The notes under the pieces were generated by a model. That model had not been told where the DNA came from, did not search any database, and saw only the letters and a program-made list of their open reading frames with translations. A stretch of DNA of 64,000 bases from Eutreptiella sp. 'Long Island Sound 2002' (lineage: Eukaryota; Protista; Euglenida), in assembly GCA_964036045.1 (NCBI GenBank), contig OZ038378.1:170500001-170564000 (forward strand). The letters are read 5' to 3'. Positions 6,059 through 40,122 of the stretch are shown one piece after another. Positions within the stretch are counted from its first letter, which is position 1. Every line of letters starts with the position of its first letter. Made by a program: the position numbers and the translations under genes.

Positions 6059-7509
6059 GCAATCCCTGGCCGGGGTACGTGTTGGTCTTTGTGTTTTTTG
6101 GTGCTGGGATGGCTCTCGATGAGCTGCCCGGCTATCTTTGCGCTGTTACAGCCCCCGATCGCCGGCGAAAGGTTGCCCCCCTCGCTCCCCCCAAAGACCC
6201 AACTCTGAGAGGTGCGGAGTGCGGGAAACAGCCCTGGGACCTGCAAACAGTGCAGCTCCCCTGACCGAGAGCCCCCCCCCCCCCCCCCCCCAAAAAAAGA
6301 AACAAATTTTGCCGGGGATCCGCGGCTTATGGCACTGGGAGCGCACTCCACCAGCTCTACTTCATGGCAAAATGCCTGGCAATAGAGCGCACCGCTGATG
6401 TGTAACACCTGGCGCTTGGAGTTGGGAGCTGATGTAGGGAGCACCTTCCAAACTTCACGGTCTGAGTGTGAAGTCTGTCAGCGCTGGCAGGGGAGTGGGC
6501 GCCATGGAGGCAGTGATGCTGCAATTCTGTAGCGTGTGTGGGATCAGGGCATCCCACCAGCCATTCGGTCATGGCGGGCGGGGGGGCGGGGGGGGCTTCC
6601 CATCTCACCCAGCTTTTTTGGGGGGGGGGATCTGAACGGAGGTGGGAGGGTGGGCATGAGATGGGAGCGCCCCCTCCCCCCAAAAGCGTTTGGCTGCTGG
6701 CCTCCCTGTGACTGTGCCCCGCGTACAGCCCAGTATTGAATGTCCTCCAAAAGGTTTCATTGGTCATCAAGCCGAAGGTAGTGGAGGCGCCCTGTGGTGG
6801 TCACACGGATGCTGTGCAGCGCAACACACGAGATACGGGCCATGTTGGACTGCGTCTGGGTGGCAAGGGGGCTCTTAGGAGCCTGAAATTAGGGCCCCAA
6901 GTACTACAGATCATGGCATGGCGACACCAAAGCTGGGGCAGCCCCAATTTTTTTCCGGTTGCCATTACTTCAGGCGTTGGCCGCCCGCAGAGCACCGCAG
7001 ACAGCCAAACCTGCCAAAAGGTAACACTTTGGGGCTATTTCTGGCCGCCTCTGCCACCCGGCCTCCGAAGGTGGTGCGATCACCGATGGAGCAGAAACAG
7101 AAATTTTTCAAATCCACAAAATCGAATCTGTGATGCCATCCATCAAAGGACTGGAGGTGGATAGAATCAGCAAAAGTCCGCCGGTGAGACAACAGAAAGA
7201 AGGAGCTTTTCCGTCTGCACTGGACAGTCCCCTTCAACTGTTCCCTCGTGTGCAGTAGTTGTGAGGGTCAGAGTCAACGAGACATTTTCGAGTCTAATTG
7301 GGCACACGATTTTGGTGGAATTCGGGTCTGCCTGCTGCCGGTCTGGTGGTGCCGCCTGCCACAGCTCACGAAAATGTGGCGCCGGGAAAGCGCCAAGCCC
7401 CGAATTCCGGATTTGGAAGTCTGTCGCAGACAACTTTGGGAAAACGTCCCAGGGACGTTGCCCTCGATTTTCCCGGCCAAAGTGCCGTCTGTGGAGGGTG
7501 CATGTCATC

Positions 7510-8579
7510 ATGGCACTCTGCACGTCCGGTGGCCTTGGGACAGCGCACTCCAGCTCGGTGACCGCCAGCCCCGAGTCTAATGTGGGTCTCAACCCGAACC
7601 AATCCTCACCCTCGACCCCGCGGCATCCCCCAGCGCTGTTCCGCTGGCCGTTCACCATCGACCAGCAGCTGCAGCTGCGCGCCACCTCCGACAACCGGGT
7701 GCTCCTGACCTGCGTCAATTTCGGGTTTGTCCCTTTCCTCTGGAACTTCGTCTGCAATCTTGCGAGGCTCCCCCTTCCCCATTTCGTCATCGCCGCGCTC
7801 GACGCCCCCACGTACTCGTGGTGCATGGCACGGGGCCTCCCCGTTTTCTTCTTCCCTGTTCCGGGCACCAACATCACGACGGAGCCCGTGTCGTTCCACC
7901 ACCCGGACTACATCGCCCTCACGCGGGCCAAGCCACTGGTCACCGCCGCGCTCCTGGGCCGCGGCTACGACGTCTTTTTCTTCGACGTGGACGTGGTCGT
8001 GTTCCAAGACCCGTTTCCTCTCATCCGCAGGAAAGACGTCATGTACTTCTCCACCGACCGCCAGTTCTCCGGCCTCCGATCCCCGCGGACCACTTCCAAA
8101 TCCCCAACAAGAACACGTTCGGCTCGCTCCTCAACTCGGGGGTCTACTACGCCCCGGCCACTGCGTCTGTCCGCGCGGCGTTTGACCAGATCAATGCCCT
8201 GCTCGCGCTGGGCTGGGGCGACAGCGACCAGCCCGCGTTCAACGAGTTCTTGTGCACCCCGCCTCGGGGGCGGCGCGAGGGCGACCGTTACTGCTTCTGG
8301 CCGGGCGGTGACGGCGCTGGACGCCCCCCGACGGCCCGTGTTCCCCTGCAAATCCACGTATGGCACCCTTTGACAGCCGCCAATGGGAAGACCCTTCTCA
8401 GTGAAAAGGAGGACCTGTGGCAGCCCAAACACATGCATTCCTATGAGGCCCTCATCCCTGTGGTAAAGGGCATGTATACCCTGCACAACAATTGGATCAA
8501 GGGGATGTGGGATAAGGTGCACCGGCAGCTGCATTGCGGGTTGTGGTTCTTGGATGCACACGGGGTCTGTCCCGTCTAG
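7510..8579 (+). CDS. Nucleotide-diphospho-sugar transferase (PF03407/GT77-like), interrupted by a 1-bp frameshift near 8076
   Basis: Frame 1 has RVLLTCVNFGF..FLWNF..NL, HFVIAALD, KP..TAALLGRGYDVFFFDVDVV.FQDPF (DxD motif). Frame 2 has LNSGVYY, DQPAFN and HNNW..G..DK. Adding one C at ctccgat restores a single ORF. The true start is uncertain because the frame is open from 7261. Confidence 0.8.
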
Positions 8580-9379
8580 GCCTCAGCGGGGCTGTGTGCG
8601 TGTGTGTGTGTATCGGGGGGAGGGGCTCACTCCAGCAGGCGTACCCTGCTGGGCCCTTCTGAAGCACGTGGTGATCATCACTGTCCTTGTGGGTCCGAAA
8701 TACTGATTGAGTGTCGCTGATGACCCACGTTGTAATGCCCACATTTTTTTCTCTTGGACCAATATTCAACGGGAAATTTCTTCATGGTGGACTGTCATGC
8801 CTGTGCCAGAAGGATGCCGACAATTTTGAGGTGTTTGTGGGCCTCCTGATTGCCGGATGTTTCCATGATGCCTTCATGGAATAGATAGACTCACAAAGTG
8901 GGGACGCGGTTTTGGAACCCAGTTCAGACGGGTCTGTGCAGGCATCACAACATGACACCTCTGCGTGCATATGATGCTTGATGTCTTTCTGTGGTGGTCC
9001 CTGCCGAGGGCTGACTGAAAATTTCATCATCAACAAGATCTTTGAAGGAACGATAAACCATTAGCTCTGGAATGATTCTTCGGTACAACAACCTCACCGC
9101 CATTGTTCACCTGTCCCTCATGTCAAATCAATATCAGACCCAAAGTGGCACTCAGTTTTCAACACCAACAAATCTCTACTTCGTTTTTGACTGTCTGTTG
9201 CCGATTGTGTAAGTGATGGACGCGTGTGGAGGCTCTAGACAGGTTGCATGCAGCTCAACACAGATAAACACCCCACCCGGGTCGCCATTGAAGGCTTGCA
9301 GTTGCTACAGTTTTGTTGGTGACTGTCCTGCTTTGCTTGCCCCCGCGGTGTTGGTCACAGCCGGTACTCACATGCACTG

Positions 9380-10470
9380 CTGCTGGGTTGGTGGTCATGG
9401 CTGCTGCCCATCTGATAGCACCTTGGCAAGGTTGAGACCCACGTTTGTGGCGTTGGAACCGTCACTGACACTGGACTGTGTTCAGCACGACACAAAAAAC
9501 CTTCTCATTAACCCTGTTCTCCATGTCATGAACCCTGTCACTGGTGTCATGAAATGTGTCAATTGTGTTACAGACCTTGTTAGTAACATTGCGGACCCTG
9601 TCAACCGATATATGAGCCATGTCAGCCATGTCACAAACCTGCCAGCTGTATCACTAGCGGTGTCAACCATGTCATGAACTGTGCCAACTGTAACAGACAT
9701 GATCTGCAATATTTGTGAGAGTGGGGTGCAAGACCTCTGAATAGATTGCCAGCAGGAAAGCAATGCCTCTGCTACAAATTGTCTGTTACAAGGTTAAAAT
9801 GTGGATGCACTCCTTTTATAGAGTAAAATGATACAGTTGTTGCAATAGATGTGCCGCTTCCCTCTCTTTGTTTAGGTGGTTTCTCCTGCCAAGGCACTCT
9901 TAGGGAGACCTGTCCGGGCGGCAGAGTGGTCTTTTCACGGTGGTAGGGTGCGGCACAGCTTGAAAGCGAGCTTGCTACACAGCGTCAATGCCTGCTGCAC
10001 GGCATGACAGAGTGCCTACTGCATAGCGTCACCGGGTGCCAACTGTGTGGCGTCACGGAGTGCCTGTGGCATGGCGTCACAATGGCCTGTTGCATGACAT
10101 CGCGGATGACCTGCTGCACGAAGGGTCTGACGAGGACCTGGGGGGCGCATCATATGGCATGACTAGCCAGGGTAGGTGTTAGCGCAGGAGTAGGCAGGTG
10201 GAGACGTAGGGGCAGGGGCAGGGGTAGGGGCTGGGTTGAGGGCAGGAGAAGATTTGGGGGCAAAGGCAAGACGAATGGTTGGGGTAGAGGCAGGGGTGAG
10301 GGACAACATGCTGGAGGGGACAGCCACGAGCTTGGAGTGCCTTGACGGCAGTATGGGGCAGTATGGGGCATGTCCAGGCGCAGCCACCCAGCCCAAAGAC
10401 GTAGAGGGCGTATCGGGGACCAAGGCGTACCAAGAAGCCGGAGAGAGCATCATCACATCTTGCATATAGG
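9380..10470 (-). pseudogene. Decayed coding remnant with heptad and 8-aa repeats (retroelement ORF1/gag-like?)
   Basis: The minus strand of 9500-9640 reads VDRVRNVTNKVCNTIDTFHDTSDRVHDMENRVNEK (21-bp periodicity). 9980-10120 has a ~24-bp periodicity encoding DAMQQALR-like repeats with stops and frameshifts. A Pro-rich stretch lies at 10150-10465. Confidence 0.35.
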
Positions 10471-10519
10471 TCAGCCCACAATATATTCATACCACACGAT
10501 ACGCCGATGTTTTTTCCTA

Positions 10520-11133
10520 CCCCCCCCCCCTTTGTAATAGCTACGCCCTTGTAATAGCTACAGTAGGCGTAGGGACCATATTAATTTGGTACCTAATTTT
10601 AATTCGGTACAAATGTAGTGCAGCCGCATAACACATGGGTTTGGTGACAAATTTGCCAGCTACATAGGGTCATGGACACATTTGTTGTGAGTGTTTGCCC
10701 ACTTGAACCCACATAGCTCTGATTTGGGGGATATTTGTGTACTATATCCCCCTTTCTTGCACCAGCTCACCATGCAATCTTCTCTTTTTCAACCTGGGCG
10801 TCCAATGATTTTCACACGTTCCACCGGTGAGCGTGTGGATGCCACAATGAAGGGGCCATCAAAGACTGGGGACCCGTTTGTGGTGTTGGAGTACATGAAG
10901 GGTGGGCGGGTGGTCACACACCCCTGTGCCGCCCTTTCAAAAACCGAGTTCTCCATCCGATCACCGTCCCCATCCCCGGAGCCGGAGGTGCACTCATACC
11001 ATGCATTCTCTCACGTGTATGTCGGTAGTTGTATGTGTCGTGCGCAAGCCACGCCCTTGTAATAGCTACAGTAGGCGTAGGGACCGTATTAATTCCGTAC
11101 TTTGGCGTAGCTATTACAAGGGGGGGGGGGGGG
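10520..11133 (+). mobile_element. Mini-element A1 (614 bp): poly-C/poly-G TIRs, TA flanks, internal direct repeats, small ORF
   Basis: TA|C11-tttgtaatagctacgcc ... ggcgtagctattacaa-G14|TA. A ~40-bp direct repeat (cttgtaatagctacagtaggcgtagggacc.tattaatt) lies at ~10548 and ~11057. A near-identical copy at 24520 has different flanks. Confidence 0.85.
10772..11062 (+). CDS. 96-aa small ORF of mini-element A1 (SH3/Tudor-like beta domain suspected)
   Basis: Reads MQSSLFQPGRPMIFTRSTGERVDATMKGPSKTGDPFVVLEY. The ATG is in caccATG context, 6 nt after a pyrimidine tract + CAG. Homologous starts occur at 56483, 57572 and 58381. Confidence 0.55.
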   Translation: MQSSLFQPGRPMIFTRSTGERVDATMKGPSKTGDPFVVLEYMKGGRVVTHPCAALSKTEFSIRSPSPSPEPEVHSYHAFSHVYVGSCMCRAQATPL

Positions 11134-12250
11134 TACAGATGTTTCTTGTTTTGGTAGATTTGGCTGCCACGTAGCATGCCACAATGAGGGTGGAAATATT
11201 TTAGCACGGTCCCATGCAGCCCGGAAAATTTTGGCTGAATCACCTCGCAGAGGTTGTTAGATCAAAGCCAGGCAGGCGTATATATGGGGAAAACGCCACA
11301 TACCCCCCCATTTTGGCCATTTTGGGGCTATTCGCGTACCCTACCCCAAGGGGTTGAATTGTTAGTTTAACCCCTTGTAAAATCATTATTTTGTCCAATA
11401 ATCGCATCCCCCAATGAGTTTTTGGTCCGGACCCCCCCCAGACCCCCCCCACTTGAAACCCACTTTTTTCAGGTTTTGAGGGAGGGGGGGGGGTGGGGGG
11501 GGGGGTCAAAAAATGACCCCCCCTTTTTTTGGGTCGAAAATCATGAATCTTTTGGTTTTTTTCGATTTTGAGCCGAAAAAGTTTTTCCGGGTCCCGACTC
11601 TATGGGGTTTGTATGGGGCGGAGTGGGACGAGCGCTGATGCAGTTTATGCACTTTTCAGCCATTTATGCTATGTTGGCGGTTTTGGCAACCTCGGTGACC
11701 CCGTGGTACCCACTCTGAGGTGTGCGAGTGGGGATGTTGTGACAGTATATGCCTACTAGGATACGAAAGGACGTTTTTTGCAGTGTCTAGCCTTGCTTAT
11801 GGCCGTTCACAACCCGTGCAAAGACGCGAAATGACTGTTTCCACCAATAATGGCCTAGTGAATGGGGAGGTACACAACCTGCTGATGCAGTTGTTCACCC
11901 TGGGCAGCTCAAAAATCGAAGTTTTCGAAACTTGTTTTTTTGATATTGTGACCACCCAAAATGACATTTCAAGCTATGCAAAGCATGTTTTAGGCCGTAT
12001 TTACGTGTTTTTCACCTCATTTGGGTGTTAGGTCCGGGGGGGGGGGGGTCTCCCAAGGGATTGGTACACAACCTGTTTATGCAGTTTTTCAACCCGGACA
12101 GCTCAAAAATCGAAGTTTTCGAAACTTGTTTTTTTGATATTGTGACCACCCAAAATGACCATCCAAGCTATGCAAAGCATGTTTTAGGCCGTATTTACGT
12201 GTTTTTCACCTTATTTGGGTGTTAGGTCCGGGGGGGGGGGGGGGGTCTCC

Positions 12251-13894
12251 AGTGGGTATGCCTGTCGCCAGTGGGTATGGGACCAGACCATTGCGTTTTT
12301 GGAAAAGGAAAAGTACAGTGCACAGTCCCTGGACAACGCAGACCAGATACTGTCTTCCCTGCACCGCATTATCCGCCAAAACAAATGGCCTGCCAACCCC
12401 TCACGCTGTGTCCCCCTCTTGTACTTACTCGGTAAGGCCAAATCGCTCCTTAAAGGGATAATCCTATGGAGGCCCATCGCTGCGATAGTCCAGCCACAAA
12501 TCCAGCGTTTCTATCTACGCAATGCAGCGCGTGCTTTCACACTCTTTTTGCGCCTGCTAGTGGAAGAAATTACTGCCTCTTTTTTAGTCCTCAGGATATG
12601 CGACCTCCAGCCCTGGGTACACGGCCTCAGTGACTGGGGATGCACGCAGATTGCAGAGTGCGACTGCTCAGGCCAGTTTAACAATGTTACCCCCCTGTCC
12701 GTCATGCAGGACATGTCGGCAGCTATTAAATGGCTCGCTGCTAAGCGCCGTTGGAATGCCAAAGAGGTGGTATGGAGCATACACCGCGATAACAAACAGC
12801 TGGACCGTGCAGGCGTAGGCACTACGTCTCGTTTTTTCCACATGACTCACGCAGACCTGGAGAATCTCGTGTATTTTTCCCTATTAACTGACACTTACAC
12901 CCAGGCATCAGGCAGATTATGGTCCAGGACAGGTGCCATCCCAATGGGAGGACCTTTTAGCGCCCAAAGTGCGGATTTGCGCTCAGTGTGGGGAGCCAAA
13001 ACGCGAGTGGACCTGATGAGGCGGCTAGGACAGCTCACTTTTTCACCCCGTGGACACCCACTGTGGTCTACCCCACGAGGTAACACGATATCCCTGGCTC
13101 AATTCCGGGACAACGTTCTCCTTGGCGCCCGTGGGCCGACAGCTTCTACAGAAATGCAACATGTCTGTGACGTGCTGTCGGAAACGTGGTCCCTCCCCGT
13201 CCTCTGTGATTGCATGACCGACGATAATCGGGTATGTGCAGGGACGTGCATGCAGCCATCCATCACAGCAATGGGTTTCACAGTGCACATTCACGGTGAC
13301 CATCCCCCATTGGTTTATTCTCAGCCCTCTGGCCTCACCAGCGCATGGCACCTCAAGTACACTGTTACCTTGCAGTCACCGCCAGCGCACGCACACAAGC
13401 ATATATCAAACATCATCGTTAGTGCTGTCCTCAACATACACCCGTTTCTGCACACCTGGGCGGGCTGCCTCCTGAGTGTTGCTTCCTGGGCGCAATTAGC
13501 CTGCTTGTCCGGGTACCCGCGGTCAACAGTTTTGCGCGCGCTGCACTCGGCGGTTCCGCGAATAATCAGCAGGACACCCTGGGACGTCGACAGCACCCTC
13601 GGTTGGTGCTGCCACGTCGTATATTTTTTGCCAGCTACGCGGGACACTGTTTTCTTCCGCCTTCGCCGTTGGCTCCAGGCACATGCAGTGTGGTCTCCTG
13701 CGGCGTATGCCTCTTGGCACATGCCACACCCGGGACCATGCAGTGCCATATGTGCAGACTGGTGCCACGATTTTCCTGTCCTCTCTGTTTTCTCTCCTCT
13801 CCTGGATCCCTGTGAACTCATCCGAACGGGGCTCTGCCCCCGGGGGGAGGGGGGATCACGGTTTCCCACTATATGTGAAGTCGATTGTAGTTAA
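12251..13894 (+). CDS. Penelope-like reverse transcriptase, 5'-truncated, copy 1 (element 12251-14113)
   Basis: PLE-type motifs: PLLYLLGK...WRPIAA (cf. PxFYGLPKIHK..RPIVS), ECDCSGQFNNV (cf. xDVxSLFTNV), GAIPMGGPFSAQSADL (cf. GxPMGSPLSPxLANL), QFRDNV (cf. RYVDD) and thumb LSGYPR (cf. NGYP). No endonuclease domain and no start codon near the 5' end. Confidence 0.8.
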   Translation, partial: SGYACRQWVWDQTIAFLEKEKYSAQSLDNADQILSSLHRIIRQNKWPANPSRCVPLLYLLGKAKSLLKGIILWRPIAAIVQPQIQRFYLRNAARAFTLFLRLLVEEITASFLVLRICDLQPWVHGLSDWGCTQIAECDCSGQFNNVTPLSVMQDMSAAIKWLAAKRRWNAKEVVWSIHRDNKQLDRAGVGTTSRFFHMTHADLENLVYFSLLTDTYTQASGRLWSRTGAIPMGGPFSAQSADLRSVWGAKTRVDLMRRLGQLTFSPRGHPLWSTPRGNTISLAQFRDNVLLGARGPTASTEMQHVCDVLSETWSLPVLCDCMTDDNRVCAGTCMQPSITAMGFTVHIHGDHPPLVYSQPSGLTSAWHLKYTVTLQSPPAHAHKHISNIIVSAVLNIHPFLHTWAGCLLSVASWAQLACLSGYPRSTVLRALHSAVPRIISRTPWDVDSTLGWCCHVVYFLPATRDTVFFRLRRWLQAHAVWSPAAYASWHMPHPGPCSAICADWCHDFPVLSVFSPLLDPCELIRTGLCPRGEGGSRFPTICEVDCS

Positions 13895-14510
13895 CAACTC
13901 AGGTCCGATGGTACCAGCTTGGCGGTGGTTCTCAACGTACCGCTGCGACCCATTGCTTCGCGTGTTGGTGGCCTGCCCACTGGCACCTCTGTGTCTCGCT
14001 CTTGTGACAGAAAGGTACCTATGGTCTGTTAGGCCACTGACGAGCCGATTTTCTTTCTGCGTTTTTGTGCTGGCCGCGTCTTGTGCCCACGTGCATTAAC
14101 TCAGCATTCCTTCGGGGTCTCCCAAGGGACGGGTGCACAACCTGCTTATGCAGTTTTTCACCCCGGACAGCTCAAAAATCGAAGTTTTCGAAACTTGTTT
14201 TTTTGATATTGTGACCACCTAAAATGACCATCTAAGCTATGGAAAGCATGTTTTAGGCCGTATTTACGTGTTTTTCACCCTATTTGGGTATCAGGTCGGG
14301 GGGGGGGGGGGTCTCCCAAGGGACGGGTGCACAACCTGCTTATGCAGTTTTTCACCCCGGACAGCTCAAAAATCGAAGTTTTCGAAACTTTTTTTTTGAT
14401 ATTGTGACCACCCAAAATGACCATCCAAGCTATGCAAAGCATGTTTTAGGCCGTATTTACGTGTTTTTCACCTTATTTGGGTGTTAGGTCCGGGGGGGGG
14501 GGGGGTCTCC

Positions 14511-16154
14511 AGTGGGTATGCCTGTCGCCAGTGGGTATGGGACCAGACCATTGCGTTTTTGGAAAAGGAAAAGTACAGTGCACAGTCCCTGGACAACGCA
14601 GACCAGATACTGTCTTCCCTGCACCGCATTATCCGCCAAAACAAATGGCCTGCCAACCCCTCACGCTGTGTCCCCCTCTTGTACTTACTCGGTAAGGCCA
14701 AATCGCTCCTTAAAGGGATAATCCTATGGAGGCCCATCGCTGCGATAGTCCAGCCACAAATCCAGCGTTTCTATCTACGCAATGCAGCGCGTGCTTTCAC
14801 ACTCTTTTTGCGCCTGCTAGTGGAAGAAATTACTGCCTCTTTTTTAGTCCTCAGGATATGCGACCTCCAGCCCTGGGTACACGGCCTCAGTGACTGGGGA
14901 TGCACGCAGATTGCAGAGTGCGACTGCTCAGGCCAGTTTAACAATGTTACCCCCCTGTCCGTCATGCAGGACATGTCGGCAGCTATTAAATGGCTCGCTG
15001 CTAAGCGCCGTTGGAATGCCAAAGAGGTGGTATGGAGCATACACCGCGATAACAAACAGCTGGACCGTGCAGGCGTAGGCACTACGTCTCGTTTTTTCCA
15101 CATGACTCACGCAGACCTGGAGAATCTCGTGTATTTTTCCCTATTAACTGACACTTACACCCAGGCATCAGGCAGATTATGGTCCAGGACAGGTGCCATC
15201 CCAATGGGAGGACCTTTTAGCGCCCAAAGTGCGGATTTGCGCTCAGTGTGGGGAGCCAAAACGCGAGTGGACCTGATGAGGCGGCTAGGACAGCTCACTT
15301 TTTCACCCCGTGGACACCCACTGTGGTCTACCCCACGAGGTAACACGATATCCCTGGCTCAATTCCGGGACAACGTTCTCCTTGGCGCCCGTGGGCCGAC
15401 AGCTTCTACAGAAATGCAACATGTCTGTGACGTGCTGTCGGAAACGTGGTCCCTCCCCGTCCTCTGTGATTGCATGACCGACGATAATCGGGTATGTGCA
15501 GGGACGTGCATGCAGCCATCCATCACAGCAATGGGTTTCACAGTGCACATTCACGGTGACCATCCCCCATTGGTTTATTCTCAGCCCTCTGGCCTCACCA
15601 GCGCATGGCACCTCAAGTACACTGTTACCTTGCAGTCACCGCCAGCGCACGCACACAAGCATATATCAAACATCATCGTTAGTGCTGTCCTCAACATACA
15701 CCCGTTTCTGCACACCTGGGCGGGCTGCCTCCTGAGTGTTGCTTCCTGGGCGCAATTAGCCTGCTTGTCCGGGTACCCGCGGTCAACAGTTTTGCGCGCG
15801 CTGCACTCGGCGGTTCCGCGAATAATCAGCAGGACACCCTGGGACGTCGACAGCACCCTCGGTTGGTGCTGCCACGTCGTATATTTTTTGCCAGCTACGC
15901 GGGACACTGTTTTCTTCCGCCTTCGCCGTTGGCTCCAGGCACATGCAGTGTGGTCTCCTGCGGCGTATGCCTCTTGGCACATGCCACACCCGGGACCATG
16001 CAGTGCCATATGTGCAGACTGGTGCCACGATTTTCCTGTCCTCTCTGTTTTCTCTCCTCTCCTGGATCCCTGTGAACTCATCCGAACGGGGCTCTGCCCC
16101 CGGGGGGAGGGGGGATCACGGTTTCCCACTATATGTGAAGTCGATTGTAGTTAA
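14511..16154 (+). CDS. Penelope-like reverse transcriptase, copy 2 (element 14511-16373)
   Basis: Protein identical to copy 1, with the same 5' junction and the same GGGGTCTCC flanks. Confidence 0.8.
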   Translation, partial: SGYACRQWVWDQTIAFLEKEKYSAQSLDNADQILSSLHRIIRQNKWPANPSRCVPLLYLLGKAKSLLKGIILWRPIAAIVQPQIQRFYLRNAARAFTLFLRLLVEEITASFLVLRICDLQPWVHGLSDWGCTQIAECDCSGQFNNVTPLSVMQDMSAAIKWLAAKRRWNAKEVVWSIHRDNKQLDRAGVGTTSRFFHMTHADLENLVYFSLLTDTYTQASGRLWSRTGAIPMGGPFSAQSADLRSVWGAKTRVDLMRRLGQLTFSPRGHPLWSTPRGNTISLAQFRDNVLLGARGPTASTEMQHVCDVLSETWSLPVLCDCMTDDNRVCAGTCMQPSITAMGFTVHIHGDHPPLVYSQPSGLTSAWHLKYTVTLQSPPAHAHKHISNIIVSAVLNIHPFLHTWAGCLLSVASWAQLACLSGYPRSTVLRALHSAVPRIISRTPWDVDSTLGWCCHVVYFLPATRDTVFFRLRRWLQAHAVWSPAAYASWHMPHPGPCSAICADWCHDFPVLSVFSPLLDPCELIRTGLCPRGEGGSRFPTICEVDCS

Positions 16155-16770
16155 CAACTCAGGTCCGATGGTACCAGCTTGGCGGTGGTTCTCAACGTAC
16201 CGCTGCGACCCATTGCTTCGCGTGTTGGTGGCCTGCCCACTGGCACCTCTGTGTCTCGCTCTTGTGACAGAAAGGTACCTATGGTCTGTTAGGCCACTGC
16301 CGAGCCGATTTTCTTTCTGCGTTTTTGTGCTGGCCGCGTCTTATGCCCACGTGCATTAACTCAGCATTCCTTCGGGGTCTCCCAAGGGACGGGTGCACAA
16401 CCTGCTTATGCAGTTTTTCACCCCGGACAGCTCAAAAATCGAAGTTTTCGAAACTTGTTTTTTTGATATTGTGACCACCTAAAATGACCATCTAAGCTAT
16501 GGAAAGCATGTTTTAGGCCGTATTTACGTGTTTTTCACCCTATTTGGGTATCAGGTCGGGGGGGGGGGGTCTCCCAAGGGACGGGTGCACAACCTGCTTA
16601 TGCAGTTTTTCACCCCGGACAGCTCAAAAATCGAAGTTTTCGAAACTTTTTTTTTGATATTGTGACCACCCAAAATGACCATCCAAGCTATGCAAAGCAT
16701 GTTTTAGGCCGTATTTACGTGTTTTTCACCTTATTTGGGTGTTAGGTCCGGGGGGGGGGGGGGGGTCTCC

Positions 16771-18414
16771 AGTGGGTATGCCTGTCGCCAGTGGGTATGG
16801 GACCAGACCATTGCGTTTTTGGAAAAGGAAAAGTACAGTGCACAGTCCCTGGACAACGCAGACCAGATACTGTCTTCCCTGCACCGCATTATCCGCCAAA
16901 ACAAATGGCCTGCCAACCCCTCACGCTGTGTCCCCCTCTTGTACTTACTCGGTAAGGCCAAATCGCTCCTTAAAGGGATAATCCTATGGAGGCCCATCGC
17001 TGCGATAGTCCAGCCACAAATCCAGCGTTTCTATCTACGCAATGCAGCGCGTGCTTTCACACTCTTTTTGCGCCTGCTAGTGGAAGAAATTACTGCCTCT
17101 TTTTTAGTCCTCAGGATATGCGACCTCCAGCCCTGGGTACACGGCCTCAGTGACTGGGGATGCACGCAGATTGCAGAGTGCGACTGCTCAGGCCAGTTTA
17201 ACAATGTTACCCCCCTGTCCGTCATGCAGGACATGTCGGCAGCTATTAAATGGCTCGCTGCTAAGCGCCGTTGGAATGCCAAAGAGGTGGTATGGAGCAT
17301 ACACCGCGATAACAAACAGCTGGACCGTGCAGGCGTAGGCACTACGTCTCGTTTTTTCCACATGACTCACGCAGACCTGGAGAATCTCGTGTATTTTTCC
17401 CTATTAACTGACACTTACACCCAGGCATCAGGCAGATTATGGTCCAGGACAGGTGCCATCCCAATGGGAGGACCTTTTAGCGCCCAAAGTGCGGATTTGC
17501 GCTCAGTGTGGGGAGCCAAAACGCGAGTGGACCTGATGAGGCGGCTAGGACAGCTCACTTTTTCACCCCGTGGACACCCACTGTGGTCTACCCCACGAGG
17601 TAACACGATATCCCTGGCTCAATTCCGGGACAACGTTCTCCTTGGCGCCCGTGGGCCGACAGCTTCTACAGAAATGCAACATGTCTGTGACGTGCTGTCG
17701 GAAACGTGGTCCCTCCCCGTCCTCTGTGATTGCATGACCGACGATAATCGGGTATGTGCAGGGACGTGCATGCAGCCATCCATCACAGCAATGGGTTTCA
17801 CAGTGCACATTCACGGTGACCATCCCCCATTGGTTTATTCTCAGCCCTCTGGCCTCACCAGCGCATGGCACCTCAAGTACACTGTTACCTTGCAGTCACC
17901 GCCAGCGCACGCACACAAGCATATATCAAACATCATCGTTAGTGCTGTCCTCAACATACACCCGTTTCTGCACACCTGGGCGGGCTGCCTCCTGAGTGTT
18001 GCTTCCTGGGCGCAATTAGCCTGCTTGTCCGGGTACCCGCGGTCAACAGTTTTGCGCGCGCTGCACTCGGCGGTTCCGCGAATAATCAGCAGGACACCCT
18101 GGGACGTCGACAGCACCCTCGGTTGGTGCTGCCACGTCGTATATTTTTTGCCAGCTACGCGGGACACTGTTTTCTTCCGCCTTCGCCGTTGGCTCCAGGC
18201 ACATGCAGTGTGGTCTCCTGCGGCGTATGCCTCTTGGCACATGCCACACCCGGGACCATGCAGTGCCATATGTGCAGACTGGTGCCACGATTTTCCTGTC
18301 CTCTCTGTTTTCTCTCCTCTCCTGGATCCCTGTGAACTCATCCGAACGGGACTCTGCCCCCGGGGGGAGGGGGGATCACGGTTTCCCACTATATGTGAAG
18401 TCGATTGTAGTTAA
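16771..18414 (+). CDS. Penelope-like reverse transcriptase, copy 3 (element 16771-18633)
   Basis: Protein identical to copy 1, with a synonymous SNP near 18351. Confidence 0.8.
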   Translation, partial: SGYACRQWVWDQTIAFLEKEKYSAQSLDNADQILSSLHRIIRQNKWPANPSRCVPLLYLLGKAKSLLKGIILWRPIAAIVQPQIQRFYLRNAARAFTLFLRLLVEEITASFLVLRICDLQPWVHGLSDWGCTQIAECDCSGQFNNVTPLSVMQDMSAAIKWLAAKRRWNAKEVVWSIHRDNKQLDRAGVGTTSRFFHMTHADLENLVYFSLLTDTYTQASGRLWSRTGAIPMGGPFSAQSADLRSVWGAKTRVDLMRRLGQLTFSPRGHPLWSTPRGNTISLAQFRDNVLLGARGPTASTEMQHVCDVLSETWSLPVLCDCMTDDNRVCAGTCMQPSITAMGFTVHIHGDHPPLVYSQPSGLTSAWHLKYTVTLQSPPAHAHKHISNIIVSAVLNIHPFLHTWAGCLLSVASWAQLACLSGYPRSTVLRALHSAVPRIISRTPWDVDSTLGWCCHVVYFLPATRDTVFFRLRRWLQAHAVWSPAAYASWHMPHPGPCSAICADWCHDFPVLSVFSPLLDPCELIRTGLCPRGEGGSRFPTICEVDCS

Positions 18415-19220
18415 CAACTCAGGTCCGATGGTACCAGCTTGGCGGTGGTTCTCAACGTACCGCTGCGACCCATTGCTTCGCGTGTTGGTGGCCTGCCCAC
18501 TGGCACCTCTGTGTCTCGCTCTTGTGACAGAAAGGTACCTATGGTCTGTTAGGCCACTGCCGAGCCGATTTTCTTTCTGCGTTTTTGTGCTGGCCGCGTC
18601 TTGTGCCCACGTGCATTAACTCAGCATTCCTTCGGGGTCTCCCAAGGGACGGGTGCACAACCTGCTTATGCAGTTTTTCACCCCGGACAGCTCAAAAATC
18701 GAAGTTTTCGAAACTTGTTTTTTTGATATTGTGACCACCTAAAATGACCATCTAAGCTATGGAAAGCATGTTTTAGGCCGTATTTACGTGTTTTTCACCC
18801 TATTTGGGTATCAGGTCGGGGGGGGGGGTCTCCCAAGGGACGGGTGCACAACCTGCTTATGCAGTTTTTCACCCCGGACAGCTCAAAAATCGAAGTTTTC
18901 GAAACTTGTTTTTGTGATATTGTGATCACCTAAAATGACCATCCAAGCTATGGAAAGCATGTTTTAGGCCGTATTTACGTGTTTTTCACCCTATTTGGGT
19001 ATCAGGTCGGGGGGGGGGGGGTCTCCCAAGGGACGGGTGCACAACCTGCTTATGCAGTTTTTCACCCCGGACAGCTCAAAAATCGAAGTTTTCGAAACTT
19101 TTTTTTTGATATTGTGACCACCCAAAATGACCATCCAAGCTATGCAAAGCATGTTTTAGGCCGTATTTACGTGTTTTTCACCTTATTTGGGTGTTAGGTC
19201 CGGGGGGGGGGGGGGTCTCC

Positions 19221-20864
19221 AGTGGGTATGCCTGTCGCCAGTGGGTATGGGACCAGACCATTGCGTTTTTGGAAAAGGAAAAGTACAGTGCACAGTCCCT
19301 GGACAACGCAGACCAGATACTGTCTTCCCTGCACCGCATTATCCGCCAAAACAAATGGCCTGCCAACCCCTCACGCTGTGTCCCCCTCTTGTACTTACTC
19401 GGTAAGGCCAAATCGCTCCTTAAAGGGATAATCCTATGGAGGCCCATCGCTGCGATAGTCCAGCCACAAATCCAGCGTTTCTATCTACGCAATGCAGCGC
19501 GTGCTTTCACACTCTTTTTGCGCCTGCTAGTGGAAGAAATTACTGCCTCTTTTTTAGTCCTCAGGATATGCAACCTCCAGCCCTGGGTACACGGCCTCAG
19601 TGACTGGGGATGCACGCAGATTGCAGAGTGCGACTGCTCAGGCCAGTTTAACAATGTTACCCCCCTGTCCGTCATGCAGGACATGTCGGCAGCTATTAAA
19701 TGGCTCGCTGCTAAGCGCCGTTGGAATGCCAAAGAGGTGGTATGGAGCATACACCGCGATAACAAACAGCTGGACCGTGCAGGCGTAGGCACTACGTCTC
19801 GTTTTTTCCACATGACTCACGCAGACCTGGAGAATCTCGTGTATTTTTCCCTATTAACTGACACTTACACCCAGGCATCAGGCAGATTATGGTCCAGGAC
19901 AGGTGCCATCCCAATGGGAGGACCTTTTAGCGCCCAAAGTGCGGATTTGCGCTCAGTGTGGGGAGCCAAAACGCGAGTGGACCTGATGAGGCGGCTAGGA
20001 CAGCTCACTTTTTCACCCCGTGGACACCCACTGTGGTCTACCCCACGAGGTAACACGATATCCCTGGCTCAATTCCGGGACAACGTTCTCCTTGGCGCCC
20101 GTGGGCCGACAGCTTCTACAGAAATGCAACATGTCTGTGACGTGCTGTCGGAAACGTGGTCCCTCCCCGTCCTCTGTGATTGCATGACCGACGATAATCG
20201 GGTATGTGCAGGGACGTGCATGCAGCCATCCATCACAGCAATGGGTTTCACAGTGCACATTCACGGTGACCATCCCCCATTGGTTTATTCTCAGCCCTCT
20301 GGCCTCACCAGCGCATGGCACCTCAAGTACACTGTTACCTTGCAGTCACCGCCAGCGCACGCACACAAGCATATATCAAACATCATCGTTAGTGCTGTCC
20401 TCAACATACACCCGTTTCTGCACACCTGGGCGGGCTGCCTCCTGAGTGTTGCTTCCTGGGCGCAATTAGCCTGCTTGTCCGGGTACCCGCGGTCAACAGT
20501 TTTGCGCGCGCTGCACTCGGCGGTTCCGCGAATAATCAGCAGGACACCCTGGGACGTCGACAGCACCCTCGGTTGGTGCTGCCACGTCGTATATTTTTTG
20601 CCAGCTACGCGGGACACTGTTTTCTTCCGCCTTCGCCGTTGGCTCCAGGCACATGCAGTGTGGTCTCCTGCGGCGTATGCCTCTTGGCACATGCCACACC
20701 CGGGACCATGCAGTGCCATATGTGCAGACTGGTGCCACGATTTTCCTGTCCTCTCTGTTTTCTCTCCTCTCCTGGATCCCTGTGAACTCATCCGAACGGG
20801 GCTCTGCCCCCGGGGGGAGGGGGGATCACGGTTTCCCACTATATGTGAAGTCGATTGTAGTTAA
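19221..20864 (+). CDS. Penelope-like reverse transcriptase, copy 4 (element 19221-21083)
   Basis: As copy 1 except ICDLQ changed to ICNLQ, a change shared with copy 5. Confidence 0.8.
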   Translation, partial: SGYACRQWVWDQTIAFLEKEKYSAQSLDNADQILSSLHRIIRQNKWPANPSRCVPLLYLLGKAKSLLKGIILWRPIAAIVQPQIQRFYLRNAARAFTLFLRLLVEEITASFLVLRICNLQPWVHGLSDWGCTQIAECDCSGQFNNVTPLSVMQDMSAAIKWLAAKRRWNAKEVVWSIHRDNKQLDRAGVGTTSRFFHMTHADLENLVYFSLLTDTYTQASGRLWSRTGAIPMGGPFSAQSADLRSVWGAKTRVDLMRRLGQLTFSPRGHPLWSTPRGNTISLAQFRDNVLLGARGPTASTEMQHVCDVLSETWSLPVLCDCMTDDNRVCAGTCMQPSITAMGFTVHIHGDHPPLVYSQPSGLTSAWHLKYTVTLQSPPAHAHKHISNIIVSAVLNIHPFLHTWAGCLLSVASWAQLACLSGYPRSTVLRALHSAVPRIISRTPWDVDSTLGWCCHVVYFLPATRDTVFFRLRRWLQAHAVWSPAAYASWHMPHPGPCSAICADWCHDFPVLSVFSPLLDPCELIRTGLCPRGEGGSRFPTICEVDCS

Positions 20865-21479
20865 CAACTCAGGTCCGATGGTACCAGCTTGGCGGTGGTT
20901 CTCAACGTACCGCTGCGACCCATTGCTTCGCGTGTTGGTGGCCTGCCCACTGGCACCTCTGTGTCTCGCTCTTGTGACAGAAAGGTACCTATGGTCTGTT
21001 AGGCCACTGCCGAGCCGATTTTCTTTGTGCGTTTTTGTGCTGGCCGCGTCTTGTGCCCACGTGCATTAACTCAGCATTCCTTCGGGGTCTCCCAAGGGAC
21101 GGGTGCACAACCTGCTTATGCAGTTTTTCACCCCGGACAGCTCAAAAATCGAAGTTTTCGAAACTTGTTTTTTTGATATTGTGACCACCTAAAATGACCA
21201 TCTAAGCTATGGAAAGCATGTTTTAGGCCGTATTTACGTGTTTTTCACCCTATTTGGGTATCAGGTCGGGGGGGGGGGGGTCTCCCAAGGGACGGGTGCA
21301 CAACCTGCTTATGCAGTTTTTCACCCCGGACAGCTCAAAAATCGAAGTTTTCGAAACTTTTTTTTTGATATTGTGACCACCCAAAATGACCATCCAAGCT
21401 ATGCAAAGCATGTTTTAGGCCGTATTTACGTGTTTTTCACCTTATTTGGGTGTTAGGTCCGGGGGGGGGGGGGGTCTCC

Positions 21480-23123
21480 AGTGGGTATGCCTGTCGCCAG
21501 TGGGTATGGGACCAGACCATTGCGTTTTTGGAAAAGGAAAAGTACAGTGCACAGTCCCTGGACAACGCAGACCAGATACTGTCTTCCCTGCACCGCATTA
21601 TCCGCCAAAACAAATGGCCTGCCAACCCCTCACGCTGTGTCCCCCTCTTGTACTTACTCGGTAAGGCCAAATCGCTCCTTAAAGGGATAATCCTATGGAG
21701 GCCCATCGCTGCGATAGTCCAGCCACAAATCCAGCGTTTCTATCTACGCAATGCAGCGCGTGCTTTCACACTCTTTTTGCGCCTGCTAGTGGAAGAAATT
21801 ACTGCCTCTTTTTTAGTCCTCAGGATATGCAACCTCCAGCCCTGGGTACACGGCCTCAGTGACTGGGGATGCACGCAGATTGCAGAGTGCGACTGCTCAG
21901 GCCAGTTTAACAATGTTACCCCCCTGTCCGTCATGCAGGACATGTCGGCAGCTATTAAATGGCTCGCTGCTAAGCGCCGTTGGAATGCCAAAGAGGTGGT
22001 ATGGAGCATACACCGCGATAACAAACAGCTGGACCGTGCAGGCGTAGGCACTACGTCTCGTTTTTTCCACATGACTCACGCAGACCTGGAGAATCTCGTG
22101 TATTTTTCCCTATTAACTGACACTTACACCCAGGCATCAGGCAGATTATGGTCCAGGACAGGTGCCATCCCAATGGGAGGACCTTTTAGCGCCCAAAGTG
22201 CGGATTTGCGCTCAGTGTGGGGAGCCAAAACGCGAGTGGACCTGATGAGGCGGCTAGGACAGCTCACTTTTTCACCCCGTGGACACCCACTGTGGTCTAC
22301 CCCACGAGGTAACACGATATCCCTGGCTCAATTCCGGGACAACGTTCTCCTTGGCGCCCGTGGGCCGACAGCTTCTACAGAAATGCAACATGTCTGTGAC
22401 GTGCTGTCGGAAACGTGGTCCCTCCCCGTCCTCTGTGATTGCATGACCGACGATAATCGGGTATGTGCAGGGACGTGCATGCAGCCATCCATCACAGCAA
22501 TGGGTTTCACAGTGCACATTCACGGTGACCATCCCCCATTGGTTTATTCTCAGCCCTCCGGCCTCACCAGCGCATGGCACCTCAAGTACACTGTTACCTT
22601 GCAGTCACCGCCAGCGCACGCACACAAGCATATATCAAACATCATCGTTAGTGCTGTCCTCAACATACACCCGTTTCTGCACACCTGGGCGGGCTGCCTC
22701 CTGAGTGTTGCTTCCTGGGCGCAATTAGCCTGCTTGTCCGGGTACCCGCGGTCAACAGTTTTGCGCGCGCTGCACTCGGCGGTTCCGCGAATAATCAGCA
22801 GGACACCCTGGGACGTCGACAGCACCCTCGGTTGGTGCTGCCACGTCGTATATTTTTTGCCAGCTACGCGGGACACTGTTTTCTTCCGCCTTCGCCGTTG
22901 GCTCCAGGCACATGCAGTGTGGTCTCCTGCGGCGTATGCCTCTTGGCACATGCCACACCCGGGACCATGCAGTGCCATATGTGCAGACTGGTGCCACGAT
23001 TTTCCTGTCCTCTCTGTTTTCTCTCCTCTCCTGGATCCCTGTGAACTCATCCGAACGGGGCTCTGCCCCCGGGGGGAGGGGGGATCACGGTTTCCCACTA
23101 TATGTGAAGTCGATTGTAGTTAA
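21480..23123 (+). CDS. Penelope-like reverse transcriptase, copy 5 (element 21480-23342)
   Basis: As copy 4, with a private synonymous SNP near 22559. Confidence 0.8.
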   Translation, partial: SGYACRQWVWDQTIAFLEKEKYSAQSLDNADQILSSLHRIIRQNKWPANPSRCVPLLYLLGKAKSLLKGIILWRPIAAIVQPQIQRFYLRNAARAFTLFLRLLVEEITASFLVLRICNLQPWVHGLSDWGCTQIAECDCSGQFNNVTPLSVMQDMSAAIKWLAAKRRWNAKEVVWSIHRDNKQLDRAGVGTTSRFFHMTHADLENLVYFSLLTDTYTQASGRLWSRTGAIPMGGPFSAQSADLRSVWGAKTRVDLMRRLGQLTFSPRGHPLWSTPRGNTISLAQFRDNVLLGARGPTASTEMQHVCDVLSETWSLPVLCDCMTDDNRVCAGTCMQPSITAMGFTVHIHGDHPPLVYSQPSGLTSAWHLKYTVTLQSPPAHAHKHISNIIVSAVLNIHPFLHTWAGCLLSVASWAQLACLSGYPRSTVLRALHSAVPRIISRTPWDVDSTLGWCCHVVYFLPATRDTVFFRLRRWLQAHAVWSPAAYASWHMPHPGPCSAICADWCHDFPVLSVFSPLLDPCELIRTGLCPRGEGGSRFPTICEVDCS

Positions 23124-24519
23124 CAACTCAGGTCCGATGGTACCAGCTTGGCGGTGGTTCTCAACGTACCGCTGCGACCCATTGCTTCGCGTGTTGGTGG
23201 CCTGCCCACTGGCACCTCTGTGTCTCGCTCTTGTGACAGAAAGGTACCTATGGTCTGTTAGGCCACTGCCGAGCCGATTTTCTTTCTGCGTTTTTGTGCT
23301 GGCCGCGTCTTGTGCCCACGTGCATTAACTCAGCATTCCTTCGGGGTCTCCCAAGGGACGGGTGCACAACCTGCTTATGCAGTTTTTCACCCCGGACAGC
23401 TCAAAAATCGAAGTTTTCGAAACTTGTTTTTTTGATATTGTGACCACCTAAAATGACCATCTAAGCTATGGAAAGCATGTTTTAGGCCGTATTTACGTGT
23501 TTTTCACCCTATTTGGGTATCAGGTCGGGGGGGGGGGTCTCCCAAGGGACGGGTGCACAACCTGCTTATGCAGTTTTTCACCCCGGACAGCTCAAAAATG
23601 GAAGTTTTTGAAACTTGTTTTTGTGATATTGTGATCACCTAAAATGACCATCCAAGCTATGGAAAGCATGTTTTAGGCCGTATTTACGTGTTTTTCACCC
23701 GATTTGGGTATTAGGTCCAAGGGGGGGGGGGTCTCCCAAGGGATTGGTACACAACCTGCTTATGCAGTTTGTCACCCTGGGCAGCTCAAAAATCGAAGTT
23801 TTCGAAACTTGTTTTTTTGATATTGTGATCACCTAAAATGATCATCCAAGGTATGTAAAGCATGTTTTAGCCGGTATTTATGTAGTTTCCACCCTATTTT
23901 GGGTGTGTGTTGCTGGCGGTAGATTCTCTGCGAGGTGGACTTGCCGAAGGCAATAGAATTTCTTCCTCCAAGATGTCTGTGATGTCAGGTCTACAACTCC
24001 TCGGCCAATTAGGATGGCACATAGGGCCTGGAAAAAGCTGCTTGGTGCACCCAGTGTGCGATTTTGTTTTTTTGTGTGCCCATCGGGACCTGCTATATGG
24101 GACATCTAGAGGCACACTGCAAACAACTCAGAGAATGCAGATGAAGTCACGAAAGGGGAAAGAATAGTGGGCAACATTTTGAAAAAAGCCGTTTGGTTAA
24201 TTAATTTTCTTTGAAAAAGCGACTCATCCCAAGGGTTAGTCGTGCCGCCGGGACTCAGGATTCAATTTTTAAGGGTAGGTGGGGGTGGGGCGGTGACCTG
24301 CCAAAACACGTAAAGAGAAAGCAGAGGACCCTACTTGTTACGCCACCACCTTTGTCGGTTGGGGGGAGGAGATTGTCATTGGTGTATCCATGAATTGTTT
24401 CACAACCTAGGCAAGAGAGAGAAACACTCATGCGTGAGCCGTGGTGACACAATCAGTTTTGAAAATGGGGCATGCCAATCAGAAACGACAACCTCCGCAT
24501 ATTTGGTCAACTAGTCATA

Positions 24520-25131
24520 CCCCCCCCCCCCTTTGTAATAGCTACGCCCTTGTAATAGCTACAGTAGGCGTAGGGACCGTATTAATTTGGTACCTAATTT
24601 TAATTCGGTACAAATGTAGTGCAGCCGCATAACACATGGGTTTGGTGACAAATTTGCCAGCTACATAGGGTCATGGACACATTTGTTGTGAGTGTTTGCC
24701 CACTTGAACCCACATAGCTCTGATTTGGGGAAATTTGTGTACTATATCCCCCTTTCTTGCACCAGCTCACCATGCAATCTTCTCTTTTTCAACCTGGGCG
24801 TCCAATGATTTTCACACGTTCCACCGGTGAGCGTGTGGATGCCACAATGAAGGGGCCATCAAAGAATGGGGACCCGTTTGTGGTGTTGGAGTACATGAAG
24901 GGTGGGCGGGTGGTCACACACCCCTGTGCCGCCCTTTCAAAAACCGAGTTCTTCATCCGATCACCGTCCCCATCCCCGGAGCCGGAGGTGCACTCATACC
25001 ATGCATTCTCTCACGTGTATGTCGGTAGTTGTATGTGTCGTGCGCAAGCCACGCCCTTGTAATAGCTACAGTAGGCGTAGGGACCGTATTAATTCCGTAC
25101 TTTGGCGTAGCTATTACAAGGGGGGGGGGGG
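24520..25131 (+). mobile_element. Mini-element A2 (612 bp), near-identical to A1; ORF at 24772-25062
   Basis: TA|C12-tttgtaatagctacgcc ... ggcgtagctattacaa-G12|TA. It differs from A1 at only a handful of positions, and its flanks are unrelated to those of A1. Confidence 0.85.
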
Positions 25132-38311: not shown

Positions 38312-39457
38312 GTGGAACACAAAGAGAACACTCATGCTTGCTACAGTATTTGGTCGGGCCAGGTGCCTACCCGTGCAGGCGTCAAAATGGTGAAAGCGAG
38401 TGGCACACAAAGCGAAGTCAGTGGGGACATGTGGCTATGGGCGCAGGGATGGGGCCCTGCAATTGATTGTATCCACCATGCCCTGATAGGGTCGGCTACT
38501 GGTGGCGGCGTTGTGTTTTGGCATCTGCATGAAGATGCGAGATATATATTGTAGGCTTAACGGGACAGATCCGGATATGCCACAGGTCGTTCAGGCTGCA
38601 GGCTGCAGATGGGATGTGCATGACTAACCGGCGCCTGTGAGAGGGGTGAGAGCTGACCCAGATGGCCAAAGGAAAATTTGTGCAGTGGTACCGAGGAAAA
38701 CTCAATGTAGAACTGGATCGTGGTGTAGTGCGACAAATTGACACAATGAACTGAGAGTTGTGACTGTGACCATATACCTGTGACACGGGGGTGTATGCAA
38801 GTCGTGTATCTGTTGCTCATGGCCCAAGGAACCGCCCTCCCCGGCAGCCCCCCCAGCACCCCTCCCGGAACCCCCCTTCCAGCCCCCCCCCCCCCCCCCC
38901 AAGGGGCCTCCGACCAACATTTAGTTGGGGGGGGGGGGGGGGTAGTTGGCGTCCAGAAACGAGGGCTCCCCCCCCCCCCCCGGTGCGCTGTGCGGTCCCA
39001 TCTCAACGCGAACCACTATGTGCAGTCGTCAGCACCGAATGCCGCACTATGTGTGGTATTCATGTCAAGATGGTTTATGGGCGACAGCAGAAAATAGATG
39101 GTTGATAATGACAATTTGGCACTGATCGGCAAGATGAAAACTGTGTGCCTGAAAACACCGGGTGATTCTAGATGACACACCGTCTACTGTCATGGCAGAC
39201 AGGGGTGGTTTTATCACCAAAAAAAGGGGGTTGTAGCCCCACAAAGGCCCTCTAAAACTCAAATCGGTGCGTACACCTGTATGCCAACTTCCCACTTCGC
39301 CCACTGCCCTGCCTGCCATTTCCCTGCTGCAAAAGTTGTATGCGGAGATACGCAAAGACGGAGCTTCAGGGTACTTGCACTGCATTGCAGTCCTCAGCTA
39401 ATTGCTGGTTGACTCGCCCATGCGCAGTCCTCCGTGCGCACATCAGAGTTTTGTGCC

Positions 39458-40122
39458 ATGCCCGCCAGAAGGCGATCTGACGAGGCTGAGCGTTTGGAAT
39501 GGCTCCGAAAGGCGGCCATTCTTGACACGCCTCAGGAGAAGGAGTACGACGACATCATACAGACGTTGTATTGGGTCTCGGGCTTTCCCATGGCTCATAT
39601 TTCGCTGGTTGACGACAGCCGGCAGTGGTTCAAGGCCAGAACTGGCTTGAACGTGCCTGAGACAAGCCGCACGGTATCGTTCTGTGACCATGTCGTCGAA
39701 AACAGAGAGCCACTTATTGTCCTCGATGCCAAAGCCCACCCCTCTTTCTGCGACAATCCCCTTGTGACTGGGGAGCCAGGAATTCGGTGCTACGTTGGGT
39801 ATCCCATTATTCCTTCAAGCACGACGCATTGCTTTGGGGCGCTGAGTTGCCTTGACACAATCCAGCATGAGTCCATCGCTCAGGCCCTCCGGAATATCCT
39901 AGCTTCCCTTGCCAATATCGTGGGTGCTTTGATTGACCGGAACCTGAAAGCCAGCCTCTTTGTTGCCAAGATCAGCCATGAATTACGTACCCCACTGCAT
40001 GGTATCATGGGCTCTGCTGCCATGTTGAAGGAGTCGCTCACTAGCAACGACGCCATCAACGCGCAGTCTCAGGAAATGCATCACGTTGGCAACATTGCTG
40101 CCTGTGCAGAGGGAAATCTAAG
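39458..40122 (+). CDS. Hybrid sensor histidine kinase, exon with GAF domain and HisKA H-box
   Basis: ERL..L....ILDTP, ISLVDDSRQWFKA, SFCDH, NPLVTGEPGIRCY and SHELRTPLHG. The donor GTAATT at 40123 joins in frame to 41332 (LRVVNDIVDLVKME). Confidence 0.9.

Follow-up and report, generated by a model that had tools for sequence, protein, structure and literature searches.

We describe an array of five truncated retroelement copies embedded in a satellite repeat of the euglenid Eutreptiella sp. 'Long Island Sound 2002'. The analysed stretch, hereafter the window, comprises 64,000 nt (assembly GCA_964036045.1, contig OZ038378.1, positions 170,500,001 to 170,564,000 of the forward strand), and coordinates without a further label are positions within it. 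Between 11869 and 23904, Tandem Repeats Finder delimits six blocks of a 191-194-bp repeat, each of 2-3 monomers (~194 bp), and five inserts of 1863 bp each sit between these blocks. The inserts are predicted to encode part of a Penelope-like reverse transcriptase (RT). We propose that the array results from the passive amplification, by unequal recombination, of a single 5'-truncated fragment of this element together with its flanking monomers, with a probability of about 0.85. This was the first of the alternatives put forward in the initial annotation of the locus, and it is supported by the junctions common to the copies, by a chimeric monomer and by the sharing of single-nucleotide polymorphisms (SNPs). 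The alternation that the annotation had reported, of five inserts more than 99% identical with 2-3 monomers, is confirmed, the pairwise difference being 2-3 nt.

The array units have periods of 2260, 2260, 2450 and 2259 bp, the longest of which is due to an extra middle monomer. The left block ends in a run of 16 G (12230-12245) followed by TCTCC; the first copy is then made up of an 11-nt filler (12251-12261), element homology from 12262 and a 3' end reading ...CATTCCTTC. The features of the array, all on the forward strand, are the following.

11869-12242: repeat block 1 (Tandem Repeats Finder), 1.9 copies
14114-14510: repeat block 2 (Tandem Repeats Finder), 2.0 copies
16374-16761: repeat block 3 (Tandem Repeats Finder), 2.0 copies
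18634-19220: repeat block 4 (Tandem Repeats Finder), 3.0 copies
21084-21479: repeat block 5 (Tandem Repeats Finder), 2.0 copies
23343-23904: repeat block 6 (Tandem Repeats Finder), 2.9 copies
11869-12250, +: left satellite block b0, two monomers, the first degenerate and beginning at about monomer position 30
12036-12229, +: monomer b0m2, the original monomer upstream of the insertion
12251-14113, +: copy c1, 5'-truncated predicted Penelope-like element, founder copy
12242-12250 (left) and 14114-14122 (right), +: target-site duplication GGGGTCTCC; the same pair flanks all copies
13842-14117, +: last 276 nt of the element (in c1), repeated upstream in the full-length copy at locus L006 as a pseudo-long terminal repeat (pseudo-LTR; L006 4764-5039)
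14114-14297, also 16374-16557, 18634-18817, 21084-21267 and 23343-23526, +: m1-type monomer, directly after each copy
14298-14510, also 16558-16770, 19009-19220 and 21268-21479, +: m2-type chimeric monomer, directly before c2 to c5
14481-16154, +: open frame of c2, 557 codons as listed, RT motifs from motif 1 to the thumb
14511-16373, +: copy c2, private A at alignment column 1834
16771-18633, +: copy c3, private A at alignment column 1582
18818-19008, +: extra middle monomer of the three-monomer block, resembling the middle monomer of the right cap (23527-23720)
19221-21083, +: copy c4, derived A at column 353 (Asp118Asn) in common with c5, private G at column 1808
21480-23342, +: copy c5, column 353 in common with c4, private C at column 1081
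23343-23904, +: right satellite cap, three monomers (m1 type, middle type and a diverged edge monomer)

The open reading frame (ORF) is open in all five copies, as had been stated: frames of 557-559 codons are listed when bacterial start codons are used, and the 547 codons encoded by the element are free of stops in 5/5. The description of the inserts as RT genes was overstated, since the first in-frame ATG lies at element codon 152, just past RT motif A, and the inserts are not intact genes.

The inserted element and its relatives

The ORF is best described as a Penelope-like RT of the telomerase-related type, on the basis of its predicted fold, which bears out the initial assignment. The AlphaFold2 model, computed with 20 homologues, has a mean predicted local distance difference test (pLDDT) score of 84.9. 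Its top 13 Foldseek matches in the PDB are telomerase RTs (E-values from 8e-9 to 6e-6), with group II intron RTs next in rank. In the ESM Atlas, matches in shape with a template modelling (TM) score of about 0.6 are clusters of rotifer and arthropod proteins with the domain combinations GIY-YIG+RVT_1 and HTH_animal+RVT_1+DUF8422. Pfam searches of the window ORF and ten relatives gave no RT (RVT_1) match, and neither phmmer nor a 20-sequence profile returned anything useful against PDB sequences; the RT assignment therefore rests on fold, language-model features and motifs.

The architecture of the intact element can be read from its relatives. An exhaustive profile search recovered 1386 of them, the best 150 being close and fragmentary. 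In homologues of 887-952 aa, with 40-75% identity, the RT is preceded by CxC and DK(G) motifs and, at the N-terminus, by a GIY-YIG match that is weak yet recurs. The GIY-YIG match (PF01541) falls at residues 64-145 of P0002, 12-91 of P0004 and 128-208 of P0026, and at L006 7359-7850; the E-values of 0.004-0.04 are below the Pfam cut-off, yet consistent across four proteins. The CxC and DK motifs were read directly, as CRC then DKG in P0002 and as CFC then DK in P0026, and DK is also present in the family consensus. This order of GIY-YIG, CxC and RT would make the element one of Naiad/Chlamys type, an assignment by architecture that covers Chlamys, Naiad or a new branch. Of the 947 residues of the relative P0002, the window frame aligns solely with 402-941. 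The truncation point lies downstream of the nuclease and of the CxC and DK motifs, and the window copies lack the nuclease because they are 5'-truncated. We infer that these copies make no active RT.

Motif C of the RT (window ORF residues 295-298, for instance 15363-15374 in c2) has Asp-Asn in place of Asp-Asp: almost all of the 20 family members read FRDN, and P0002 reads FRNN. An enzyme with one aspartate in this motif is presumably active, because the members with FRDN include a young family with fresh insertions. A UniRef protein from the transcriptome of Eutreptiella gymnastica belongs to the same 90% cluster and is identical to the ORF at 312/316 positions (99%); some copy of the family is therefore transcribed, and the host would be this species or one close to it.

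At other loci the family is represented by copies of varying completeness. L006 holds a near-full-length copy of ~5.57 kb, 97% identical to the body of the window inserts, with an upstream ORF1 and an interrupted nuclease-RT frame. The copies in L005, L007, L008, L009 and L010 are 93-98% identical and truncated at 8101, 8327, 8490, 8634 and 9209 in L006 coordinates, and a 66%-identical sister family in L003 has the same layout. All copies end ...CCTTCGGGG. Pseudo-LTRs occur at L006 4764-5039, equivalent to the last 276 nt of the element, and at L003 3537-3811, equivalent to 8783-9057. At L009 a truncated family copy lies within a tandem segmental duplication of ~10.9 kb (~6500-11400 and 17400-21191), which has no satellite; both duplicates have one common truncation point. 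L006 also has a partial monomer downstream of its full-length element and, directly after this monomer, a long (GGGGACCTAT)n-like minisatellite (10490-10800).

Origin and growth of the array

All five window copies start at L006 coordinate 8468, contain one and the same filler of 11 nt, a duplicate of element sequence situated 8 nt downstream, and are flanked by the same duplication of GGGGTCTCC. Because truncation point, filler and target duplication are common to 5/5 copies, their single origin is demonstrated, and they all derive from one insertion. The flanking repeats are equally uniform: the monomers after each copy are identical in 5/5 cases outside the G-run, and those before c2-c5 in 4/4. 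Since the element targets a G-run that each monomer possesses, it might be envisaged to have inserted five separate times, at intervals of two or three monomers; this scenario is refuted by the shared junctions and retains practically no credibility, as the flanking monomers are in register, the chimeric monomer recurs four times, and independent insertions show different truncation points (six among seven insertions, that of the window included).

The family targets G-runs. A run of 7-17 G adjoins each of the eight independent insertions, namely the window insert, those in L005-L010 and that of the sister family in L003; by comparison, 2.6% of window positions outside the array have a G or C run of at least 10 nt no more than 12 nt away. 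Every satellite monomer ends in 11-16 G, so the satellite is a natural landing site for the element, and the RT-satellite association follows from this targeting. The 3' side of the insert has just four G in all five window copies. The copy at L006 sits at the same monomer position, within a 78%-identical version of the satellite repeat, as expected if every monomer offers a G-run. Homopolymer targeting thus explains the tie between such elements and repeats that bear G-runs; targeting of (C)n has been reported for Chlamys (Craig et al, 2021; PMC8557442).

The manner in which the unit was multiplied is recorded in the m2 monomer. This monomer is chimeric, its 5' half matching m1 and its 3' half matching b0m2, with one private 1-nt deletion. 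All 12 diagnostic sites are clean: columns 27-58 hold five of them, all with the m1 allele, and columns 117-195 the other seven, all with the b0m2 allele. There is a single switch point, inside the monomer, and the unit boundary is seamless, the mark of an unequal homologous exchange in which the monomers on either side of the insert took part, and not of reverse transcription. In target-primed reverse transcription, joints are expected at G-runs and with new duplications.

This boundary bears directly on the second alternative of the initial annotation, a coupled system in which the RT copies a read-through transcript of RT and satellite and thereby extends the array. Template jumping does give tandems of Penelope-like elements (PMC8557442), the family is transcribed, and satellite-like pieces are present in libraries guessed to be RNA. 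However, the units meet in a seamless switch in mid-monomer instead of at a G-run bearing a fresh target duplication, and neither the nuclease nor the N-terminal part of the RT nor a usable start codon is present in the copies. The genuine head-to-tail joints of the family (L006 5035 and L003 3808) connect the 3' end directly to the 5' end, with no satellite or other repeat between. A search for the RT with and without the satellite, as the annotation had suggested, counts against coupling: apart from the window and L006, six of the eight independent insertions sit in unrelated, non-satellite DNA. The RNA-library contigs listed match the RT at ~98%, continue beyond 12262 and 14117 into sequence that differs from the window locus, and come from other copies since their flanking sequence differs from it; among the RNA-library pieces listed, none crosses an insert-satellite joint. 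We found no sign of such a system and regard it as highly improbable.

Sequence differences between the copies provide the order of events. There are six variable sites in all over 1864 aligned columns (353, 1081, 1582, 1791, 1808 and 1834). Copy c1 retains the ancestral base at column 1791, lost in c2-c5, and is for this reason the founder; c4 and c5 have one derived base in common, and each copy carries a private site. The three-monomer block points to a further out-of-register exchange, because its extra monomer resembles the middle monomer of the right cap. In-register variants, a chimeric joint monomer and nested derived sites, the marks that unequal crossover leaves in higher-order repeats, are thus all present. 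The three in-frame substitutions comprise two synonymous changes and one Asp-to-Asn change (c4 and c5). The open frames are uninformative on selection, because with six substitutions over 9.3 kb five open frames would be expected under neutrality.

The same haplotypes are relevant to the possibility that the array is an artefact of assembly, one or two real copies having been expanded or a longer array collapsed. The region is hard to assemble, since two contigs of the ENA assembly end within the array: L001 stops 67 nt after copy 5, and L002 starts before copy 2. Each copy nevertheless has its own SNP haplotype, and the ordered, reproducible private sites are unlike errors. L001 (c1-c5) and L002 (c2-c5) are moreover collinear with the window, including the single three-monomer block, an agreement that may reflect the same reads and is to be taken as consistency rather than independent proof. 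We consider an artefact very unlikely, and a somewhat larger true number of units would leave the mechanism unchanged.

Taken as a whole, the observations suggest the following history. A Naiad/Chlamys-type element of this euglenid would insert by target-primed reverse transcription into G/C homopolymer runs. In one event, a 1.86-kb dead-on-arrival copy, devoid of ORF1, the nuclease, the CxC and DK motifs and a start codon, would have entered a short array, some five monomers long, of an abundant 194-bp repeat, in the G-run where two monomers meet. Direct repeats would then have flanked the insert, and unequal homologous recombination between a downstream and the upstream monomer would have duplicated the segment composed of the insert and two monomers. 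More out-of-register exchanges between the resulting 2.26-kb units would have led to five copies, with three monomers in one unit. We infer that the exchange was an unequal sister-chromatid or allelic crossover and not replication slippage or break-induced replication.

Several points weigh against passive amplification. The copy number of the 12-kb array is taken from assembly contigs, which may have been built from some of the same reads as the window. Half of the six substitutions are located in the 3' untranslated part of 219 nt and, of the other three, which lie in the ORF, two are synonymous; this faintly hints at constraint or at mutational bias, but the events are too few to carry weight. 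Recombination mediated by complementary DNA (cDNA) and DNA-DNA exchange would, moreover, be formally indistinguishable by sequence alone.

The 194-bp repeat and its surroundings

The Logan contigs of the genome's runs indicate that the abundance of the repeat greatly exceeds that of the element: summed k-mer depth, which is not a copy number, is ~1e6 for the repeat and 11200-12200 and 1e2-1e3 for the RT body. A k-mer depth as high as that of the monomers is also seen in the left flank (11200-11868). Contigs elsewhere join ~11852-11866 to monomer position ~30, and the L006 array also starts at about position 30. There may thus be a larger dispersed repeat unit, of which the '194-bp satellite' would be the tandem portion. 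An exact scan of Joint Genome Institute (JGI) metagenome contigs with the satellite core gave 0 matches.

If the 194-bp repeat belonged to the element, as a 3' tandem-repeat tail or a pseudo-LTR, the array would be a tandem of whole elements. Internal tandem repeats are known in some Chlamys families, and the L006 copy is likewise flanked by the satellite repeat. Against this, the copies in L005 and L007-L010 end at the element 3' end, ...CTTCGGGG, and are followed by unrelated DNA. Sensitive comparisons detected nothing in the monomer that resembles the 5.5-kb element or its pseudo-LTR, and confined the homology between the array flanks of the window and those of L006 to the monomers. In the genome's runs the k-mer depth is also some thousand times higher over the repeat than over the RT body. 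This origin of the repeat appears extremely improbable.

Another possibility is that the repeat is a G-tailed non-autonomous passenger of the G-run-targeting family, each monomer having been retro-copied into the previous G-tail. The variable monomer ends of 11-16 G, to be compared with the element end GGGG, the short dispersed arrays at at least two loci and the enormous k-mer depth speak for this idea. The repeat shows no similarity to the 3' end of the element, no ribozyme and no significant fold: Rfam gave no match in the window at the gathering score and none at E-values up to 5 in 11600-16800, a segment that takes in the 276 nt equivalent to the pseudo-LTR, and the monomer folds no better than shuffled sequences on either strand (z 0.25 and -0.69). 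We consider a passenger origin very unlikely; if true, RT and satellite would be functionally linked genome-wide, though the five-unit array itself grew by recombination.

A 156-bp tandem repeat near the L003 element (9434-9772, recurring 4.4 kb on at 13952-14133) was considered as a conserved link between RT and repeat and rejected, as it is not adjacent to the element (380 nt downstream). It has a 13-nt motif, GAAGTTTTCGAAA, in common with the window monomer, and no wider similarity to it.

The array is internal, with host genes on both sides, among them a nucleotide-diphospho-sugar transferase domain (glycosyltransferase-like exon, 7261-8373) and histidine-kinase exons with GAF-HisKA and HATPase_c domains (39434-42088). 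No telomeric repeats of the (TTAGGG)n type were found within the window. The array is bracketed by two copies, 99.2% identical and 14,001 bp apart, of a 612-bp element resembling a miniature inverted-repeat transposable element (MITE) of Stowaway style (10520-11131 and 24521-25131). This element is bounded by a C-run and a G-run and has terminal inverted repeats of ~28 nt and a TA duplication at each copy; a diverged third copy lies at ~52096-52870. Since the bracketing copies have their own TA duplications and different flanks, they look like separate and recent insertions, outside the mechanism of the array. Runs of at least 10 G or C number 38 in the ~52 kb of the window outside the array, and some of them are termini of the MITE-like element. 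The stretch 62000-64000 has ~80% G+C and long overlapping frames on both strands (643 and 668 codons), rich in proline and alanine, for which no Pfam match was obtained.

Known systems and wider meaning

The permuted architecture with an N-terminal GIY-YIG domain was described for Naiad/Chlamys by Craig, Yushenova, Rodriguez and Arkhipova (2021; PMC8557442). The family shares with these elements the order of GIY-YIG, CxC, DK and RT in full-length relatives, pseudo-LTRs arising from partial tandems, frequent 5' truncation, insertion at (C)n/(G)n, an upstream ORF1 in some members and the fact that no hammerhead ribozyme was found. It differs from them as published in its host, a euglenid (Discoba), a lineage absent from that paper, and nearly all of its members depart from the usual two aspartates in having motif C as FRDN. 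A literature search found no published report of Penelope-like elements in euglenids and nothing relevant on the Eutreptiella genome; as far as this search shows, a euglenid is a new host for this class of elements.

The comparison with the endonuclease-lacking Athena/Coprina elements, made in the initial annotation, fails. The RT is telomerase-related in both cases and the window copies encode no nuclease, but here the nuclease is missing by truncation alone, full-length relatives carry it at the N-terminus, and the locus is an internal one devoid of telomeric repeats. Non-LTR retrozymes, tandem hammerhead-bearing repeats proposed to be non-autonomous partners of Penelope-like elements (bioRxiv 10.64898/2026.07.22.740005), are similar in that short tandem monomers lie beside such an element. 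In contrast to retrozymes, the window monomer has neither a hammerhead or other Rfam match nor similarity to the pseudo-LTR, and its predicted folding does not exceed that of shuffles.

Composite higher-order repeats are formed where unequal crossover multiplies a transposon that has inserted in a tandem array, along with monomers. The present array resembles them in its in-register variants, its chimeric joint, its nested SNPs and the one unit with an extra monomer. It differs in its small size (five units, 12 kb), its position on a gene-bearing chromosome arm and not at a centromere, and the Penelope-like nature of its insert.

The regular pattern at this locus has a mundane cause and gives no reason to pursue it as a new RT-satellite replication system. 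It is a clean case of a targeted retroelement insertion seeding a higher-order repeat, and a datable one, since one can read from it which copy was the founder, where recombination joined the units and in what order they were duplicated. At the level of the family, the sequences add to the evidence that permuted Penelope-like elements, with their N-terminal nuclease, are young and active in euglenids, beyond the published lineages.

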